This document shows positions 1,069 to 61,124 of a stretch of 64,000 nucleotides of DNA, in pieces; position 1 is the first letter of the stretch, and each line of letters opens with the position of its first letter. The notes under the pieces were generated by a model. It was given only the letters and a program-made list of their open reading frames with translations, was not told the origin of the DNA and did not search any database. The DNA lies in the sequence record PP355768.1; one strand, 5' to 3'. A program made the position numbers and the translations under genes.

Positions 1069-1779
1069 TTACGGTCTATTTGTACAGAATGTAAGCATGC
1101 AGTCATAAAATATAATACGACTGTCTTCTGTTGGTCTTATTTGAACAGTGGCATTTGGAGGAATGTTATTGAAGAAAAAGTTGCTAGATGCGTAAGCTTC
1201 AAATCTCCATGAATGACCATTTCGTCCGCCTTTAGTATTTTCGATGTTAAGAGTAAGTTCACCTCCCCATTGGGAACCGTTAACTATTACAACAAATCTG
1301 AAAATACGATTGTCATATCCGTCGTTGTTACGCTCAAATTTTACATTAACGTTTAGAGCTAATCTACTAGAAGCTTCCCATGGTGCATTACATGTAAACG
1401 TTGCACCTCGACTAATCCAAGATTGTCCTTCAACCCAAGTAACATTACCTACTCTGGTTCCAGCTGGCATGTAACGCCCGTCAGATTCTTGTCTTGTATA
1501 ACAATTAATATCATTATTAGTAATTGTTATGTCATTATCAAGAGTTTTTCCGTTTATTCTACGGGTTTTAAAGACTGCATCTGTTGCAGCCGCTGCCAAT
1601 GAAGCATCAGTAGTTGGAGAACCTGATAATCTGGTTAATCCATATTTATCCTTGGTGGATTTTAGCGCTTGAAGACTTTTTGGAGTAACAGCCAAATTGT
1701 TAGAAGTAGCTGAAGCCACATCTGAGTCTTTAGCAAATTTTACTATACCAAATACACTGTCAGACGCTTTTGATGCCAT
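1069..1779 (-). CDS. 12: Short tail fibre gp12, C-terminal part
   Basis: AVTPK repeats, position upstream of wac; ORF start is internal. Confidence 0.85.
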   Translation of the reverse strand: MASKASDSVFGIVKFAKDSDVASATSNNLAVTPKSLQALKSTKDKYGLTRLSGSPTTDASLAAAATDAVFKTRRINGKTLDNDITITNNDINCYTRQESDGRYMPAGTRVGNVTWVEGQSWISRGATFTCNAPWEASSRLALNVNVKFERNNDGYDNRIFRFVVIVNGSQWGGELTLNIENTKGGRNGHSWRFEAYASSNFFFNNIPPNATVQIRPTEDSRIIFYDCMLTFCTNRP

Positions 1780-2050
1780 GAAACAACACGCTTAGGAGTT
1801 ACTGCGGTAGTTTCGTCAGTTCCTGCTTGTGCTTGAGCCGCAGTAGTTAACCTAACAGTTCCATCTACGTTTTCTTGTGCTTTCACAGTTTTAAACACAT
1901 GACCGAGAGCCGCCGCGGTAATAGTTCTGTTTGCTGCTGTTAATGCTGCGGCTTCGGTATTAGTTGCGTATCGTGTTAAGCCAAGAATTGCGGTAGTTGC
2001 TTCAGGCCGAGTAATTGTGGATTTTAATGTAGCAGGAGTTACCGCAGCAT
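1780..2050 (-). CDS. 12: Short tail fibre gp12, upstream fragment (out of frame with downstream part)
   Basis: Translates to ...NAAVTPATLKSTITRPEATTAILGLTRYATNTEAAALTAANRT...AQAGTDETTAVTPKRVV. Confidence 0.8.
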
Positions 2051-2054
2051 TACC

Positions 2055-3957
2055 ATGAAAGAATTTTATATTAGCGTTGAATCTCTAGGCAATGACATTG
2101 TAGAACGTTATATCGATTCTACTGGTGAGGAACGCATGCGTCGTGTTCCGTATTCTCCTGTTATGTTTAGTCATTGCATGGAAGAAACAAAGTACAAAGA
2201 CATCTATGGCAAGTATTGCAAGAAGAATACATTCCCAACTATGAAAGATGCACGCGATTGGATGCGTCGTATGGAAGATATGGGAATGGAAGCAATGGGT
2301 ATGGATGATTTCAAACTCGCGTATATCAGTGATACTTACGGTTCAGAAATCGTCTATAATAAAAAATTCATCCGAATCGCAAACTGTGACATTGAGGTTA
2401 CTGCATCTCAATTCCCAGACCCGATGAAAGCAGAATATGAAATTGATGCTATCACTCATTACGATTCGGTTGATGATAAGTTCTACGTATTTGATTTACT
2501 GCATTCTCTTTATGGTTCTGTTTCCGAGTGGGACAAGAAACTTGCTGCTCGTGGATTTATTGACCTGGCTATCTCGATGTCTTATTATGCGAAGATGCCA
2601 TACCAAGGTGTAATGAGTCCAATTAAAACATGGGACGCAATCATCTTTAACAGTCTGAAAGAACAAGACAAAGTTATTCCGCAAAGTCGTTCTCATGTTA
2701 AACAGTCATATCCTGGTGCGTATGTTAAGGAACCAGTTCCTGCTGCATATCGTTATATCATGTCGTTTGACTTGACATCTCTGTATCCGTCAATCATCCG
2801 ACAGGTTAATATTTCACCAGAAACCATCGTTGGACAGTTTAAACTTCATCCGTTGGGTGAGTACATTAACAAGACTGCGCCGCGTCCGTCTGACGAATAT
2901 TCATGTTCACCCAATGGTTGGATGTATCGTAAAGATGTAGATGGTGTCATTCCAGTTGAAATCGCGAAGGTATTTTACCAGCGTAAAGAGTGGAAAAATA
3001 AAATGATGGGTGCCAAACGAAATCAAGAACTGATTAAAAAGGTTCTGAATGATAAGAAGTTTGGAACTATCGATAAATTCGCAGAAGTTAATGTCTATGA
3101 AGATTTCTCTGATGATATGAAAGCAGAACTGCTGACATATACCGAAGAGTGTCTTGACAAACTGATGTTTGAATGTAAACACGCTGAAATCTTGGGTAAC
3201 ACTAACCAGTTAAACCGTAAGATTCTGATCAACTCCCTTTATGGTGCATTGGGTAACATTTACTTCCGTTATTATGATTTGCGTAACGCATCAGCAATCA
3301 CCTTGTTTGGTCAAATGGCAATCCAATGGATTGAACGTAAAGTTAATGAATACCTCAACAAGGTATGCGGTACTGAAGGACATTCGTTTGTAGTAGCCGG
3401 TGATACTGACTCAATTTACGTTTGTGTTGATAAGGTTATTGAGAAAGTAGGTCTTGAGCGTTTCAAAGAAACTAACGATTTGGTCGAATTCCTGAACCAA
3501 TTTGGCAAGAAGAAAATGGAACCTTGGATTGACCAATCATATCGTGAGATGTGTGAATACATGAACAATAAAGAACATTTAATGTTCATGGACCGTGAAG
3601 CTATTTCTTGTCCTCCGTTGGGGTCAAACGGCATTGGCGGATTCTGGAAAGCGAAGAAACGATATGCTCTGAACGTGTATGATATGGAAGGTACTCGATA
3701 TGCAGAACCGCATCTGAAAATCATGGGTATGGAAACTCAGCAAAGTTCTACACCAACTGCTGTTCAGAATGCGTTGGAAGAATCTATTCGGCGTATGCTG
3801 CAGGAAGGTGAAGAATCTTTACAGCAATATTATAAGCAGTTTGAGTCTGAGTATCGTGAGCTTGACTATAAAGTAATCGCAGAGGTTAAGACCGCCAACA
3901 ACATCGGCAAGTATGATGATGGCGCAGGATATCCAGATAAAGGTACTCCATATCACA
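2055..3957 (+). CDS. 43: DNA polymerase gp43, internally deleted and 3'-truncated
   Basis: Family B motifs DIEVT, SFDLTSLYPSII, KILINSLYG, GDTDS; jump KLAARG|FIDL; ends GTPYH. Confidence 0.95.
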
Positions 3958-3960
3958 GGG

Positions 3961-4374
3961 TTAGACTATGAAGAGAAATCGTCTCTTCTTGACATGTTCG
4001 ATTTTTATTGAATTTTGTGATTCAATAGTATGTTCATATTCGTATTGGAGCACGGAATTCTTTAACGGCGCTATGCTAAGTAATTCTGCATTTAATCTTT
4101 TACGCAATTCTAAAATTTTATAAGCAATATTTGACGCATCAATGCTTAAAGATTTACCTTCAGTTTTAACAATCCTTCGTGCTTCAGTTAAAGCGTCTAG
4201 AGACGTATTTCCGTATTTCTCATACATACGTATAACTGATTTTGCAGTATTAACAATATCTTCATATGAAGATATTTCCTTTCTTAGCTTATTATTCAAT
4301 TCTTCTGCTGCATAGAGCTTTGACATGAGTATAAGCTTTTCCAATTCATGCGATGTTTCCATTATGAACTCCAT
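3961..4374 (-). CDS. Hypothetical protein (137 aa), last gene of methyltransferase operon
   Basis: ORF overlaps upstream ORF by 13 nt; no recognised motif. Confidence 0.7.
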   Translation of the reverse strand: MEFIMETSHELEKLILMSKLYAAEELNNKLRKEISSYEDIVNTAKSVIRMYEKYGNTSLDALTEARRIVKTEGKSLSIDASNIAYKILELRKRLNAELLSIAPLKNSVLQYEYEHTIESQNSIKIEHVKKRRFLFIV

Positions 4375-4724
4375 CCTGTAAATTTTTCACTATTAGAATC
4401 CCAGTGTACACTAACATCAGGAGACATATAACAACTAAAATCTCCATTATATCCGGCTAATTCAAGCGTATATCTGACAAAATATTCTAAAAGCTCTTCT
4501 GACCAATTATCGGAATACACTATAAAATGTTGAAACAGCTCATCATATTCATCAAATATGAATACACGCTGAAGCTGCTCTGCTTCAGAAACGTATAATC
4601 CAGATGCGTATTCAGTATGCATCACTAGATTATCGTCATCCTTATAGAGGAGTTTTAGCCCAAGCTCTTTTGGGCTAGTTTCATCAACTACTTCATCGTT
4701 TAAATTTAATAAAATTTTTATCAT
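4362..4724 (-). CDS. Hypothetical acidic protein (120 aa)
   Basis: ORF tightly packed behind MTase subunit (3-nt gap). Confidence 0.7.
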   Translation of the reverse strand: MIKILLNLNDEVVDETSPKELGLKLLYKDDDNLVMHTEYASGLYVSEAEQLQRVFIFDEYDELFQHFIVYSDNWSEELLEYFVRYTLELAGYNGDFSCYMSPDVSVHWDSNSEKFTGWSS

Positions 4725-4727
4725 ACT

Positions 4728-5204
4728 TTACTCGAAAAAGAAATCTAAATTTCCAGATTCGTTCATAGGTTTAACATAATCTGGCATCCACTCAGGGTAT
4801 TTTCTACCTTCTGACGTGTCTGTCTGATCAATAGTATTTGCAAACGCAAAATTATTCATAACTATGTTTCTATGCTCTGGAGTATCTCCAATAATGTTTA
4901 AAACTCGATTGCATAAAAAATCATAGTTATCTTTCATGTATTCTATTGCGAATATATCCTTTATAGCTTCAGTTGGTGTACAGTACTTAAGCTTTTGTCT
5001 TAATACGGCTTCAACTAAATTTCCATCTCCGGCAGAAGGTTCCAGGAAAGTTTTTCCTGGATAAAAATCTTCTTCTTTAAGCATGGATATCATTAAATCG
5101 CAGCAATACTTATTTGTAAAAATCTCATCAGTTTCAAGTTGTCGTTCTCTTGATATTTGTTCAGACTCTCGGTGATTATCTAATTTCATCAATAGAAACC
5201 CCAT
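4728..5204 (-). CDS. DNA methyltransferase SAM-binding subunit (motifs X/I); start probably 5189
   Basis: TDEIFT (motif X-like) and FLEPSAGDGNLV (motif I), acidic motif II FAIEYM; no NPPY motif. Confidence 0.8.
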   Translation of the reverse strand: MGFLLMKLDNHRESEQISRERQLETDEIFTNKYCCDLMISMLKEEDFYPGKTFLEPSAGDGNLVEAVLRQKLKYCTPTEAIKDIFAIEYMKDNYDFLCNRVLNIIGDTPEHRNIVMNNFAFANTIDQTDTSEGRKYPEWMPDYVKPMNESGNLDFFFE

Positions 5205-6386
5205 TTACTACGTTTTCTGCATATTCCCACTCTTCATCCGAAATGTTAAAATGTTCTTGTACCATTTCTCGAGTCCATTCTTTAGTAAAGTCTACGACAG
5301 GAGCATGCTTAATCATTCTTTTACCTGCACCACCACCTAAACCAGCGTTATAAGTACATACTAATTTTATAACAGGAAGTGAATAAAATTTTATAGCGTT
5401 TTCTGCTTCTTCGGATGAATTGAAAAATACCGTGCATTCATTTTTTGGATTTCCGACATTTATAGCAGTATTTCCGTTTACCATTCCTTTATAATAATCT
5501 GGACCCATTAAAATTTTACCGTTCGTATTTACTGATAGTTTTCTATTAAATACGATATAATTATTACTATTTTTTGTAGTTTCTAAGCGAGCATCAGTTT
5601 TGACTTTGTTTGCTATGTTTTTCGCAATAGTGTTATTCAATACTATTGATACAAAATCATCATTGTTATATGTATATTTAGCTCCAGTTTTACCATTTTC
5701 TAAAACAAACGACGGAGTTTCATTTTTTGTAAACTTAGAAATAGCAAGTTGAGTCATCATACCTGCATTAAAATACTTATCTCCGTTATTGTCATCAATA
5801 ATTGCGCGTTCTAATCTTGGTTTAAATTCTGGTTTATGCGCATTAATTCCGGCTGAATGCAGATATGATGCTGGCGTAATACATACAACATTATTAGATA
5901 CTTCCAATGCTTTCTTTATAAATTTACTATCATGCTTAAATGGAGGATTCATGATAATTGTATTAAATTTTCTCATTTTAGTTTCCAAAAAATTAAAACG
6001 AATAAAACACCCAAAATGCTCACTTATGTATTCGCACTTTTCTTTAACTTGGCTTATAAAGAAAATTGAAGTTACGTCTACACCGATTAGGTCAAGTAAT
6101 CTAATCACTTCTATTGATTCTATCACACATAAGTTATAAGCATCACACAATAGTCCATGCTTATGTATTGCTAAAATTTCGCTTTCTTCTATCAATCTTT
6201 TAGCTCCAGCGAATGTAAGCATATTGGATGTTTCGTCCGAAGCTTTTTTAGAATCACCAAAAAGACCAGTCTGAGTTCTAATATATGCATTATAATGATG
6301 TTCTGTGGCAGCTTCGTCCAAAGAAAACTTTACATTACAACGTTTCTTTTCAGATAATCCTTTACATTACAACGTTTCTTTTTCAT
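5176..6386 (-). CDS. N6-adenine DNA methyltransferase catalytic/TRD subunit (Eco57I-like); 5' end frameshifted by 32-nt duplication
   Basis: IIMNPPF motif IV, VVCITP strand, C-terminal DFTKEWT..F.IS.EE signature; ATG 6386 with SD is in frame only if the duplication is removed. Confidence 0.8.
6328..6382. repeat. 23-bp perfect direct repeat, period 32
   Basis: CTTTACATTACAACGTTTCTTTT at 6328-6350 and 6360-6382. Confidence 0.95.
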
Positions 6387-6427
6387 GCTATTCTCCTCAG
6401 TAGTTTACAGGAGCTATAGTAACACAT
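6387..6427 (-). promoter_or_regulatory. T4-type early promoter -10 and leader
   Basis: TGTGTTACTAT extended -10 then ACTACTGAGGAGAA leader/SD, same leader as at 17040 and 32445; -35 lost at junction. Confidence 0.7.
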
Positions 6428-6533
6428 TTTGGCATTATAGGTGCAGCCTTTATGTCTCTTCCTGAAACAGTATCAGTGTTAAGTGTTGCATTTCTAATGG
6501 GTATCATTTCTTTCATAATGGATAAAATAGCGC

Positions 6534-7347: not shown

Positions 7348-7434
7348 GGGGAGTTAGACCGTAGGGGTAGCGGGACAGACTGTAAATCTGTTGCTCAAAA
7401 GGCTCGAGTGGTTCGACTCCATTACTCCCCACCA
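7348..7434 (+). tRNA. tRNA-Tyr(GTA)
   Basis: Cloverleaf, loop CTGTAAA, long variable arm, CCA. Confidence 0.95.
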
Positions 7435-7440
7435 AATTTA

Positions 7441-7517
7441 GGGATACTAGCTCAGTTGGTTAGAGCACCGGACTTTTAATCCGGGTGTCCGAAGTTCGAG
7501 TCTTCGGTGTCCCACCA
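7441..7517 (+). tRNA. tRNA-Lys(TTT)
   Basis: Cloverleaf, loop CTTTTAA, CCA. Confidence 0.95.
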
Positions 7518-7522
7518 AATTC

Positions 7523-7607
7523 GGGTCGTTGGCTGAGAGGGTAAGCGACGGACTGTTAATCCGTGTCAGAAATGACTAGGCAGGTTCGATACCTGCACGG
7601 CCCGCCA
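7523..7607 (+). tRNA. tRNA-Asn(GTT) with long variable arm
   Basis: Loop CTGTTAA; GTCA-GAAA-TGAC variable hairpin; CCA. Confidence 0.9.
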
Positions 7608-7714
7608 AATGAAGAAGTCAGAAGACGTTCTGATAAATCGTCGGCATAGAATTCCCTGTGTACGAGTTCCCTCAACGATAACCACGTGCTTATAATTTCT
7701 TACGGCGTTGAAAG

Positions 7715-7833
7715 TTCGCTTTCAGGGATACATCTTAGAACAGAGTGCTAAACAAGATTCATCTGGTACCAAGGTGATGAGAGTCCTGTTCCCCTTTGCT
7801 TCGGCATCGTGCCAGAGTATCTCTGAAAGCGAA
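7715..7833 (+). ncRNA. Stable RNA, T4 RnaD (species 2)-like
   Basis: 17-bp terminal stem TTCGCTTTCAGGGATAC/GTATCTCTGAAAGCGAA; position between tRNAs; recalled similarity to T4 rnaD. Confidence 0.65.
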
Positions 7834-7837
7834 TTAT

Positions 7838-7914
7838 GGACCTATAGTTTAGTTGGATAAAATACTCCCCTGTCACGGGAGAGAGCGCGAGTTCGATCCT
7901 CGCTAGGTCCGCCA
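7838..7914 (+). tRNA. tRNA-Asp(GTC)
   Basis: Cloverleaf, loop CTGTCAC, CCA. Confidence 0.93.
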
Positions 7915-7929
7915 AATAAGAACGTGGCA

Positions 7930-8066
7930 GTTCTTGAAGATGAGTTTGAGTCCTGTAAGATAATGCCGAGGACGAAGCGGTTTGTTCCCACGGAATAAGC
8001 TCTATATTCGTAAGATTATATCTTTAGCGTGTTCTACATCAAGCTACTTGTTAGTACTTCAAGAAC
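7930..8066 (+). ncRNA. Stable RNA, T4 RnaC (species 1)-like
   Basis: Perfect 10-bp closing stem GTTCTTGAAG/CTTCAAGAAC; internal GAGTCCTGT..ATAATGCCG..CCACGGAA recalled from T4 rnaC. Confidence 0.65.
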
Positions 8067-8075
8067 CCGGATAAA

Positions 8076-8152
8076 TGCGGAGTAACTTCAGTTGGTAGAA
8101 TGTTGGGCTCATATCCCGACACGCGCAGGTTCGAATCCTGCCTCCGCCTCCA
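8076..8152 (+). tRNA. Initiator-type tRNA-Met(CAT)
   Basis: 1:72 mismatch, GGG/CCC in anticodon stem, CCA. Confidence 0.9.
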
Positions 8153-8157
8153 ACAAT

Positions 8158-8232
8158 TGGACTATAGACAAGCGGTTAAGTCACCGGCCTTTGACTCCGG
8201 TATCTCTGGTTCGAATCCAGATAGTCCAGCCA
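8158..8232 (+). tRNA. tRNA-Gln(TTG)
   Basis: Cloverleaf, loop CTTTGAC, CCA. Confidence 0.93.
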
Positions 8233-8234
8233 AA

Positions 8235-8327
8235 TTAATATTCATTCAACGCGTCTACAGGGGTTGAACTGATCATTCTTCTCTTAATTTCGTATGAAGT
8301 CCTCATGATGGATGGAGTGAATATTGA
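8235..8327 (+). ncRNA. Putative structured RNA between tRNA-Gln and tRNA-His
   Basis: 13-bp terminal stem TTAATATTCATTC/GAGTGAATATTGA spanning the whole spacer. Confidence 0.45.
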
Positions 8328-8328
8328 T

Positions 8329-8404
8329 GTGGCCGTAGTTCAGTTGGTAGAACTCGAGATTGTGATTCTCGTAGTCGCGGATTCAAATTCCGCCGGTCAC
8401 CCCA
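8329..8404 (+). tRNA. tRNA-His(GTG)
   Basis: Cloverleaf, loop TTGTGAT, C73, CCA; no encoded G-1. Confidence 0.9.
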
Positions 8405-8409
8405 ACAAT

Positions 8410-8495
8410 GAAGGAATGGTGGAAAAATACACGGCCCGCAAAACGCTGTGGCTGTCGCTAAGCGAATTGTGTCTATAATGGCACTTCCTTCACCA
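8410..8495 (+). pseudogene. Degenerate class II (Ser-type) tRNA-like element
   Basis: GAAGGAA/TTCCTTC-ACCA acceptor, variable hairpin TCGC-TAA-GCGA, aberrant T loop TATAAT and anticodon arm. Confidence 0.65.
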
Positions 8496-8501
8496 AATAT
8501 T

Positions 8502-8586
8502 GGAGAGTAGCGCTAGTGGTAGCAAACCGGACTTGAAATCCGGGCCATCGGAAACGGTGAGGGTTCAACTCCTTTACTCTCCGCCA
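8502..8586 (+). tRNA. tRNA-Ser(TGA)
   Basis: Loop CTTGAAA, long variable arm, GCCA. Confidence 0.93.
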
Positions 8587-8652
8587 AATTTATGAAAGTT
8601 AAACGCTGCCCATAGCAGTGGTACATCAACAATTAGATGATTAGCTTTCCAT

Positions 8653-8728
8653 GGGAGTATAGCTCATTTGGTAGAGCTCTCGACCGATAATCGAGCGGTG
8701 ACTGGTTCGAGTCCAGTTACTCCCACCA
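8653..8728 (+). tRNA. tRNA-Ile(GAT)
   Basis: Loop CCGATAA, CCA. Confidence 0.92.
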
Positions 8729-8734
8729 AATAAC

Positions 8735-8809
8735 AGGTTCTTAGTATAACGGCTATTATGCTGGGCTCCAAACCCAGTGATGAGGGTTCGATTCCTTCAG
8801 GGCCTGCCA
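8735..8809 (+). tRNA. tRNA-Trp(CCA)
   Basis: Loop CTCCAAA, GCCA. Confidence 0.92.
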
Positions 8810-17036: not shown

Positions 17037-17079
17037 GTTATTCTCCTCAGTAGTTGATAAGATAATAGTACCACATCCT

Positions 17080-20885: not shown

Positions 20886-20946
20886 CCCGTTAGTTGTGTC
20901 GTTTATTATGACTGGAGGATTGCTTTAGTTTAAGGGGCTTTGGCCC

Positions 20947-21969
20947 CTATACCTTCGCATATTTGTCAAGACGTAATTTAGCCATTAAACCTTGCGATAT
21001 ATTTTGATTAATATAATCCGTTATTTCAGAAGCAGTTGCCCCCTCTTTCATAATCATATCATTTATATCTTTGCTTTTCCAAGGCGACTTATCCCAGAAA
21101 ACTACCTTTTCGCCAGCATCTACTAAACGTTTCATACGCTTAATTGTATCAGGATGACGAGGTTCATGGTCCATAATCCACGCTCGGTTATCATGGCATG
21201 GAACTTGAGCTAAATCTAAAGACCCGCCAGTGATTGCAATAGCATTATCAATGAACAATGAATCTATTGGTCCTTCCATGACGAATACGAGTTTTGACTC
21301 ATCAATAGTGTCGAGACCATAAATTTTGGTCGCGTGTTCGTGGGCTTTGATTGTGATGTATTTTTGTGGAGCATTCTTTCGTAGTGCTCGTCCTTGAAAC
21401 GACTCAATCTCTCCTTTCTTGTTGAAGATAGGAATAACCAAACGTGGTTCGTTCGTCTCATTCTTATAGGTTCCTGGATTAACGGAGTTAACAAGAGAAG
21501 GCCATTGGTTAGTAAACCATAACCTTTTCCAAGAAGTGCTTGGAATACATCTGGCAGTCACGTATTTAACTATCGGATGTTCCTTAGGAAGTCTATCTAA
21601 TCTCTCGCAGAAATTAAGTTTTTCTATTACGGGGAGTTTTGCATTAATTTTCTCAGACGGTTCTACAGCCTTTGGCTTATCAAAGACCTGCTCCTTTCTT
21701 TTCTCAAGAAGATACTCTCGATAGAGGTCAGGTTCATTATCTTTAAGATACTGTGATAGCCACTTGTTATACTCACAGTTGAAGCAATGACAACGTAATC
21801 CTTGGCCTGCATCAAAAATCCAGAATCGGGCTTTATTGATATCTTTCTGTGAGTCACCACAAATTGGGCAACGGCAGTTTAACTTGAATGTTGAAGATGT
21901 AGTAACGTGTCTAAATTTAGGTAGGTGAGATATTGCACGAATTGCATACTCGTTATCAACCCAAGACAT
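20947..21969 (-). CDS. 61: DNA primase gp61 (complete)
   Basis: CRCPICGDS zinc finger, EGPIDS toprim. Confidence 0.96.
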   Translation of the reverse strand: MSWVDNEYAIRAISHLPKFRHVTTSSTFKLNCRCPICGDSQKDINKARFWIFDAGQGLRCHCFNCEYNKWLSQYLKDNEPDLYREYLLEKRKEQVFDKPKAVEPSEKINAKLPVIEKLNFCERLDRLPKEHPIVKYVTARCIPSTSWKRLWFTNQWPSLVNSVNPGTYKNETNEPRLVIPIFNKKGEIESFQGRALRKNAPQKYITIKAHEHATKIYGLDTIDESKLVFVMEGPIDSLFIDNAIAITGGSLDLAQVPCHDNRAWIMDHEPRHPDTIKRMKRLVDAGEKVVFWDKSPWKSKDINDMIMKEGATASEITDYINQNISQGLMAKLRLDKYAKV

Positions 21970-31579: not shown

Positions 31580-31992
31580 AAATTATGCAAAAATCTCTTC
31601 AGGTTCGTCTTGCAAATGACAAGCCTGGTACTAACATGCATCCTGATGAATTGGCTCAAGCTGGTGATATCGTGCAGTGGTTGCGTAATCAAAAAGACTA
31701 CATTGATGACGAATTCCGCGAACTGCTGACGTCTCTTGGCGGTATGAGTAATGGCGAAAAGGCAGCTAGTGCTGTGTGGAAACCATGGAAAGCTGACCAC
31801 GTCAAGATGCAGGAAACCTATATCAAAGACCTGTCTGACAAAGACCAGCTTGAAATCAAGTTTGAAATGATTGATATCCTGCACTTTGTTCTGAATATGT
31901 TTATGGCGCTTGGTCTGGATTCTGAAGAAATCTTTAAGCTGTATTATCTGAAAAATGCCGAGAATTTTGCTCGCCAAGACAGTGGTTACTGA
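31580..31992 (+). CDS. 56: dCTPase/dUTPase gp56, C-terminal fragment
   Basis: DDEFRELL, VWKPWK, FEMIDILHF, KNAENFARQ. Confidence 0.93.
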
Positions 31993-32159
31993 TGGCTAAA
32001 AGAATATCTAAGCGTCGTTTAAAAATTATCAGAAAACAAAAAGAAAGGGCCTTAGTATTGGCCCTTCGAGAAGAAATCACTCGAGAAATTGATAAAGAAA
32101 TATTAAAGGCACTTACAGCAGCTATATAAATACTCCTGTAAACTAAATAGGAGATTAAA

Positions 32160-47703: not shown

Positions 47704-47790
47704 GCGTCGATGTTGGAATTGGTAGACAAAGGAGACTTAAAATCTCCCGGGATTAAACCCGTACGAGTTCGAGTCTCGTTCGACGCACCA
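47704..47790 (+). tRNA. tRNA-Leu(TAA)
   Basis: Loop CTTAAAA, long variable arm, ACCA. Confidence 0.93.
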
Positions 47791-47792
47791 AA

Positions 47793-47869
47793 GCCCTTAT
47801 AGTGTAATGGATTAGCACACGATCGTTCTAAGGTCGGTAGTCCGGGTTCGAGTCCTGGTAGGGGTACCA
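47793..47869 (+). tRNA. tRNA-Arg(TCT)
   Basis: Loop GTTCTAA (G32), CCA. Confidence 0.9.
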
Positions 47870-52751: not shown

Positions 52752-52827
52752 GCCGGTTTAGCTCAGTAGGTAGAGCAACTCACTTGTAATGAGAAGGTCG
52801 GCGGTTCGATTCCGTCAACCGGCACCA
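52752..52827 (+). tRNA. tRNA-Thr(TGT), variant 1
   Basis: Loop CTTGTAA, CCA. Confidence 0.93.
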
Positions 52828-61048: not shown

Positions 61049-61124
61049 GCCGATTTAGCTCAGCTGGTAGAGCGCTTCACTTGTAATGAAGATGTCGCGG
61101 GTTCGACTCCTGCAATCGGCACCA
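61049..61124 (+). tRNA. tRNA-Thr(TGT), variant 2
   Basis: Loop CTTGTAA, CCA. Confidence 0.93.

Follow-up and report, generated by a model that had tools for sequence, protein, structure and literature searches.

A predicted split adenine methyltransferase with a tethered GIY-YIG nuclease in a patchily distributed cassette of T4-like Klebsiella phages

In the type IIG/IIL restriction systems (MmeI, DrdV and BpuSI), a nuclease, a gamma-type N6-adenine methylase with an NPPY/F motif and a recognition domain form one unit; the methylase is one intact chain, and the nuclease of these fusion enzymes is of the PD-(D/E)XK type, not GIY-YIG. M.AquI and M.EcoHK31I are split cytosine-5 methylases made of two polypeptides, which are encoded by adjacent or overlapping genes. 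Among phage enzymes, the Dam of T4 and Tequatrovirus is a single-chain methylase of the D12 class, and the Seg proteins and I-TevI carry an N-terminal GIY-YIG domain and are encoded by free-standing genes between conserved genes, at patchy loci of low guanine-plus-cytosine (GC) content. An Slx1-like GIY-YIG nuclease fused to a COG4123 N-methylase has been described in Lactobacillales and proposed to be restriction-modification-like (Dunin-Horkawicz et al. 2006, PMC1564403). Here we analysed a 64,000-nucleotide stretch of GenBank record PP355768.1 (hereafter the window) and in it a four-gene cassette at 3961-6386, whose first two genes are predicted to encode the two parts of one N6-adenine methyltransferase, the first of them joined to a GIY-YIG nuclease in its intact form. 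In line with a sequence-only reading of the window, which had described an operon of four open reading frames (ORFs), these are co-directional on the minus strand, and gene 1 overlaps gene 2 as gene 3 overlaps gene 4. Comparison with related sequences indicates that some T4-like phages carry this cassette as a mobile accessory element, and that the window has a damaged allele of it in a scrambled record.

The intact allele of gene 1 encodes 495 amino acids (aa) and was found in the phages K2, KLB8, KMI12, PKO111 and AShe-2020a, and also in K5 by an identical DNA match. Its product begins with a GIY-YIG nuclease domain, continues with a methylase-like core bearing the motif NPPF and ends in a recognition-type C-terminus. 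The nuclease domain of the K2 product (P0001) matched Pfam PF22945 (LEM-3_GIY-YIG) over residues 18-105 with an E-value of 2.7e-15, and further matches of the intact protein were to PHROG 314 'homing endonuclease' (1e-118), PADLOC PD-T4-3 (6e-11) and PDB entry 9u7u (1.7e-5). A word-based protein search with gene 1 returned only eight clusters, of 495-508 aa and 50-100% identity; all eight had the nuclease domain, and the contigs examined for them were those of T4-like phages. In an alignment of eight gene 1 relatives, the GIY-YIG-type Tyr, Tyr, Gly, Arg, His, Glu and Asn columns were invariant, and so was NPPF. A Pfam search detected no NUMOD or helix-turn-helix DNA-binding tail in gene 1. The absence of any nuclease motif, as reported from the letters alone, holds for the window's damaged copy, which has lost the domain, and does not hold for the intact allele. 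Since the intact gene carries a nuclease, the unit reads as a nuclease-methylase fusion with a separate cofactor half and not as a plain heterodimeric methylase. The GenBank note of KLB8 already reads 'GIY-YIG domain and N-6 adenine methylase signature', so that the domain pair had been noticed in annotation; a literature search found no study of the pair.

In the window, gene 1 (5176-6386, minus strand) is broken once. Relative to the intact 495-aa K2 allele it has a net deletion of 277 bp, which is not a multiple of three and shifts the frame, and which removes the first ~100 residues and with them the nuclease domain. The sequence-only reading had taken 5176-6386 as one ORF; this ORF runs across the deletion break, and its chosen ATG and the long frame lie in different frames. 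The longest uninterrupted ORF of gene 1 in the window has 381 aa and a TTG start. The catalytic motif IV, NPPF, was located at 5938-5949 within a Rossmann-like core (5869-6216, minus strand; K2 residues ~150-265), and the C-terminal part, presumed to recognise the target, lies at 5179-5868 on the same strand (K2 residues 266-495) and was poorly modelled. A separate allele in KpV477 has NPPY instead of NPPF.

The AlphaFold model of gene 1 was poor overall (mean predicted local distance difference test score, pLDDT, 47.5) and reached 60-79 in residues ~150-265. The core in this model has the strand and helix order b1-aA-b2-aB-b3-b4-aD-b5, with a strand-helix-strand-helix-strand stretch preceding the NPPF strand, and its best PDB matches were whole small amino-methylases (1ne2, 1wy7 and METTL5; E-values of 3e-6 to 1e-4). 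The motif I position is without a glycine loop in all eight sequences, and Ser, not an acidic residue, ends strand 2; the lack of an intact FxGxG-type loop, first remarked on for the window copy, is thus true of that copy and of eight relatives. The motif I glycine loop is not in the same chain as motif IV and sits in gene 2. At the sequence level, Pfam gave for gene 1 the MTS family alone, at 17-18 bits and below the cut-off of 23; neither gene 1 nor gene 2 exceeded the Pfam gathering score for Eco57I or N6_Mtase, and a PDB sequence search with the middle region of gene 1 returned only the NPPF neighbourhood. The middle of gene 1 might be a degenerate paralogue of gene 2, an idea that the profile-profile comparison given below did not bear out and that draws on the moderate-confidence model and its fold matches.

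Gene 2 (4728-5204, minus strand) encodes an AdoMet (S-adenosylmethionine)-binding half-domain of 158 aa from the first ATG, annotated as 153 aa in relatives. It overlaps the end of gene 1 and carries motif I, FLEPSAGDGN, at 5019-5048 (minus strand); this motif and the NPPF of gene 1 had both been named beforehand. The model of gene 2 was confident (pLDDT 87, predicted template modelling score 0.78). It opens with helices that form motif X; strand 1 and its glycine loop come next, then a second strand with Glu at its end, two helices and strand 3, and motif II is present as well. This three-strand half Rossmann fold resembles the AdoMet-binding halves of CamA, M.BseCI, a type I HsdM, MmeI, DrdV and BrxX, with E-values that were weak (from 6e-3) but consistent; the halves matched in CamA, M.BseCI, HsdM, MmeI and DrdV are N-terminal. 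Among viral models, it matched a 415-aa protein and small phage proteins, including one of cyanophage P-SSM2. Both motif I glycines were invariant in 59 diverse family members. A profile search of the PDB with the gene 2 family gave no match by sequence, and a profile search covering 1.84 billion representatives returned 3279 representative clusters at E ≤ 1e-3 and 1157 at E ≤ 1e-10. The best 150 of the 3279 matches were mostly stand-alone proteins of 110-250 aa; in those of the best 150 with at least 350 aa, the gene 2 domain was C-terminal in 13 and N-terminal in 5. In relatives, gene 2 overlaps the end of gene 1 by 14-17 nt, which suggests translational coupling.

The proposal made from the window, a single N6-adenine methyltransferase divided between genes 1 and 2, is supported by fused and split relatives. 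A 410-aa protein from a phage contig (P0026; PHROG 11371, labelled 'unknown function') starts at motif IV, continues with a gene 1-like region and has a gene 2-like end; it aligned colinearly to gene 1 residues 233-486 (E-value 3e-5) and to gene 2 (37% identity, E-value 5e-24). In two other fused chains (P0021 and P0155) the order is reversed, and both pass Pfam Eco57I. The halves also occur as neighbouring genes: in loci L009 and L010 the cofactor half precedes a 294-aa Eco57I protein starting at motif IV, and the catalytic half comes first, ahead of the cofactor half, in L008, L011 and L017. Catalytic and cofactor halves are thus found as one chain or as two adjacent genes, each in either order. 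The suspected likeness to Eco57I was recovered in the relatives, whose catalytic halves match this Pfam family (51.8 bits for the L009 partner and 61.7 bits for P0155). The L017 locus encodes a 567-aa protein (1332-3035, plus strand) that shares the middle region and the catalytic part of gene 1 (E-value 5e-13) and has a different N-terminal domain of ~165 aa; a 200-aa cofactor half follows. The terminal helix motif of the gene 1 C-terminus is common to the catalytic halves of L011, L017, P0026 and P0155. Taken as sequence comparisons, these results support well a methylase split across genes 1 and 2. Our literature search found no account of a GIY-YIG/methylase fusion like gene 1 or of natural split adenine methylases; what came closest was the different GIY-YIG/N-methylase fusion of Lactobacillales (PMC1564403).

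Other features of these relatives were recorded as well. By eye, the N-terminal domain of the L017 protein had been taken as T5orf172/GIY-YIG-like; this was dropped, as Pfam and PDB sequence searches returned nothing meaningful for it. In two metagenome contigs (L009, 4990-8577; L010, 154-3741), a 150-aa cofactor half and a 294-aa catalytic half lie directly upstream of cas3/cas5/cas8c of a type I-C CRISPR-Cas system. A metagenomic T4-like contig (L011, 257-1509) has a partial catalytic half and a 131-aa cofactor half, and then, directly after them, a complete D12-class Dam, so that a split adenine methylase and Dam can occur together at a single locus.

Set against the described systems, the cassette shares with the type IIG/IIL fusions the combination of nuclease, NPPY/F methylase and recognition region, and the gene 2 model matched the AdoMet-binding half of MmeI and DrdV. 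In contrast to their intact methylase chain, the cassette has a separate cofactor gene and a degenerate half in cis, and the resemblance lies in how the unit might work, not in membership of the class. The likeness to Seg proteins and I-TevI lies in the N-terminal GIY-YIG domain, the free-standing gene between conserved genes, the patchy locus and the low GC content; unlike them, gene 1 has as its tail a methylase-like module with a partner gene, and its nuclease belongs to the LEM-3-like family of Pfam, not to the classical PF01541. With the T4/Tequatrovirus Dam, the cassette has in common the gp56/gp61 position and, as is expected, adenine methylase chemistry, but it is not in the D12 family, and none of the four cassette proteins matched MethyltransfD12 of Pfam. 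P0026, P0021 and P0155 possess the homologous catalytic half, recognition end and cofactor half, whereas each is one chain that lacks both a nuclease domain and the additional degenerate half. M.AquI and M.EcoHK31I differ from the cassette in their C5 class, their split point and their lack of a nuclease. The Slx1-like/COG4123 fusion resembles gene 1 in joining a GIY-YIG nuclease to an NPPY-type amino-methylase (PMC1564403), but its methylase is N-terminal, bacterial, of another family and not split.

The cassette had been called phage-borne, and we found it in the natural genomes of T4-like Klebsiella phages. Its natural site lies between the primase gene gp61 (with a small opposite-strand ORF) and the dCTPase gene gp56; the annotation of phage Mineola links the flanks of the site to T4 gp56 and gp61, and in a Tequatrovirus a DNA adenine methyltransferase gene (dam) occupies the same site. 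The order of genes 1, 2 and 3 and the overlap of genes 1 and 2 are kept at this locus in phages that are only 50-58% identical. Nine of the 156 Klebsiella-phage records matched carry the cassette. Most of the others have the flanks only, with gp56 and gp61 nearly adjacent (an empty site, as in Mineola), and some have a 216-aa HNH/NUMOD3 endonuclease at the site. K2 and Mineola are identical until ~35 nt upstream of gp56 and diverge from there. The AT-richness noticed by eye was confirmed by a GC fraction of 0.29-0.34 over 4001-6500 versus 0.37-0.42 in the flanks. Because its presence is patchy, its GC content low and a nuclease domain is part of it, a mobile, selfish element fits the cassette. 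Homing endonuclease genes upstream of dCTPase and primase have been reported in Jiaodavirus (PMC9960720).

The HNH/NUMOD3 homing endonuclease (216 aa) in the gp56|gp61 gap was seen in Klebsiella phage 15882-3-2 and others (L015, 1322-1972, minus strand). The GIY-YIG gene of PMC12654880 was considered and set aside as a Sugarlandvirus gene unrelated to gene 1.

We tentatively favour, at somewhat under an even chance, the reading that genes 1 and 2 encode one adenine-methylating enzyme with a tethered nuclease, working as a restriction-modification-like or homing module. The two products would assemble into one enzyme, in which the C-terminal region of gene 1 would read the DNA sequence, and the NPPF pocket together with the cofactor site of gene 2 would methylate adenine in the sequence read. 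The tethered GIY-YIG domain would cut DNA without the mark or the cassette, such as that of a co-infecting cassette-free phage or of the host. The unit would then behave as a selfish module, like a type IIG enzyme or like a homing endonuclease that protects itself by methylation. As a speculation prompted by the presence of gene 3 alongside the GIY-YIG form only, its acidic product might be a partner of this nuclease form or might moderate it.

Several observations weigh against the favoured reading. The main difficulty is that gene 1 appears to have its own cofactor-blind first half of the fold: in the model, gene 1 seems to hold a complete Rossmann-like sheet in cis, so that the docking place of gene 2 is not obvious. 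The middle region is also the best-conserved part of gene 1 in the alignment of eight relatives and is therefore not a decaying relic, and a profile-profile comparison of this region (K2 residues 106-232) with the gene 2 family gave a probability of <1%. Gene 1 is broken in KpV477 (one frameshift) and in PP355768, and only a 113-residue piece of it was found in AM.K1; the gene is therefore dispensable. One sampled gene 2 relative had no catalytic half within its 1.7-kb contig. In addition, GIY-YIG fusions can be accidents of domain mobility (PMC1564403).

In a rival explanation that we consider rather unlikely, a free-standing GIY-YIG homing endonuclease became fused by accident to a split orphan adenine methylase, dam-like and possibly anti-restriction, the nuclease only spreading the locus and the methylase being independent of it. 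Homing endonuclease genes are known to land in the gp56|gp61 gap (PMC9960720), a SegE-like GIY-YIG gene lies nearby in locus L004, nuclease-free split methylases exist (L008 and L009), dam stands at the same locus in a Tequatrovirus, and the warning that GIY-YIG fusions may reflect mobility (PMC1564403) applies here too. However, the fusion persists across relatives of 50-100% identity, in which linker and core are better conserved than the two ends; L017 joins the same core to a different N-terminal domain and still keeps its gene 2 partner; and gene 1 is without the DNA-binding modules typical of Seg or Tev enzymes. The missing motif I glycine loop and the missing acidic end of strand 2 in all eight relatives, the complete fold that the model shows in cis and the sub-threshold MTS score as the only Pfam result would instead suit a methylase module that is dead and serves as a DNA reader for the nuclease, gene 2 being an AdoMet-binding regulator or the remnant of a tandem duplication. 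We regard this as improbable, since NPPF is invariant in the eight aligned relatives, gene 2 keeps all cofactor motifs, is strongly conserved and overlaps the end of gene 1 by the same 14-17 nt, and the fused single-chain relatives speak for a single enzyme made of both parts.

Protection against restriction is a common role of orphan methylases in phages, and the sequence-only reading had proposed a heterodimeric methylase directed against restriction or BREX, possibly helped by two accessory proteins for specificity or inhibition, with no part for a nuclease. The split methylase itself is supported, and the window allele does lack the nuclease domain. Yet the nuclease-less state is that of a single damaged allele in a scrambled record, all eight clusters from the protein search have the domain, and genes 3 and 4 match no anti-defence or other family, gene 4 being restricted to one lineage, so that we hold this explanation to be very unlikely. 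Going beyond the favoured reading of one methylating enzyme with a tethered nuclease, a further proposal would make the cassette an undescribed selfish phage module, in which a reader derived from a methylase directs a GIY-YIG nuclease and the AdoMet half supplied in trans decides between methylation, for self-protection, and cutting, by which cassette-free DNA is excluded. The gene pair, with its degenerate half, catalytic half and separate working half, would also be a living intermediate on the path, by duplication, to circularly permuted amino-methylases. This proposal is a long shot.

Two-gene amino-methylases that occur naturally in either order, beside single chains in either order, would offer a concrete series of steps in the circular permutation of methylase classes. 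Small phage 'methylase fragments' that are annotated as truncated or of unknown function would then be working subunits, and the gene 2 family numbers thousands of representative clusters. With a GIY-YIG domain coupled to a methylase reader, the nuclease-methylase fusion enzymes would gain a further nuclease fold, and homing endonucleases would be linked to restriction-modification logic inside a virus.

Gene 3 (4362-4724, minus strand) encodes an acidic protein of 120 aa with an isoelectric point of 4.1. It follows gene 2 in every GIY-YIG-bearing locus, with 52-56% identity in other T4-like phages, and was present in none of the nuclease-free split systems sampled. Gene 4 (3961-4374, minus strand) encodes a coiled-coil protein and was seen only in Klebsiella phages; the window copy has a single break, the loss of its 3' end at the segment boundary at 4007/4008, and its last residues there differ from those of all relatives, which have 136-140 aa. 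Family searches gave neither gene 3 nor gene 4 a match, and, apart from the nuclease domain of gene 1, NCBIfam and PADLOC offered no family that was informative on genes 1, 3 and 4. Just upstream of gene 1 lies a leader or ribosome-binding 14-mer (6391-6404, minus strand), which had been said to match other early genes of the window. This claim proved weak, with one further exact copy only in the window (17041-17054, minus strand), and 8 of 100 shuffles gave at least 2 matches at up to 2 mismatches; the copies are too few to name a shared early-gene signal.

The window is 100% identical to PP355768, Klebsiella phage vB_Kpn_AM_K6, which was deposited as a 'complete genome' of 261,044 bp, versus 164-175 kb for its Jiaodavirus relatives. 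Of the window stretch around the cassette, only 4008-6426 matches the cassette of K2 (PP355764) and K5, from the same laboratory; this segment is 100% identical to K2 in two aligned pieces, and the neighbours beyond its bounds at 4008 and 6426 are not natural ones but were brought there by joints in the scrambled record. The left flank in the window consists of a fibritin/collar-fibre region (1-2055) and a DNA polymerase region (2056-4007), which measures 1952 bp against 2707 bp in complete Jiaodavirus and aligns in three pieces; the right flank, from 6427 onward, is a tRNA region as in other Jiaodavirus. The cassette thus stands with a broken DNA polymerase gene on one side and a tRNA cluster on the other. 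Fragments of its natural neighbours, 99.6-100% identical to K2, are displaced by 14 kb (the primase end, at 20892-20989) and by 25 kb (gp56, at 31584-32081) from the cassette, which is further evidence that the record is scrambled. From these alignments we conclude that the local context of the cassette in the window is a scrambled-assembly artefact or, less likely, that of a heavily rearranged variant.

Two other deposits of the same laboratory behave similarly. PP355766 (K4) has 288,685 bp, a length implausible for the genus, and matches the window in broken pieces; OR941409 (AM.K1), flagged UNVERIFIED_ORG, has an equally implausible 100,456 bp and broken matches to the window. Both are probably affected by the same assembly problem, and the gene content or 'novel operons' of PP355768, and probably of these two records, are not trustworthy without reads.

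Within the window, the family B DNA polymerase gene (gp43-like; 2055-3971, plus strand) is broken: next to its counterparts in complete Jiaodavirus it shows two internal gaps and lacks the 3' end, and the fibritin/collar-fibre region that abuts it (1-2055) is not its natural neighbour. Fourteen tRNA genes were found (7348-8809; 47704-47869; 52752-52827; 61049-61124), ten of them in one cluster. Among them, tRNA-Thr(tgt) is present twice, 8.3 kb apart, which may be a duplication made by the assembly.

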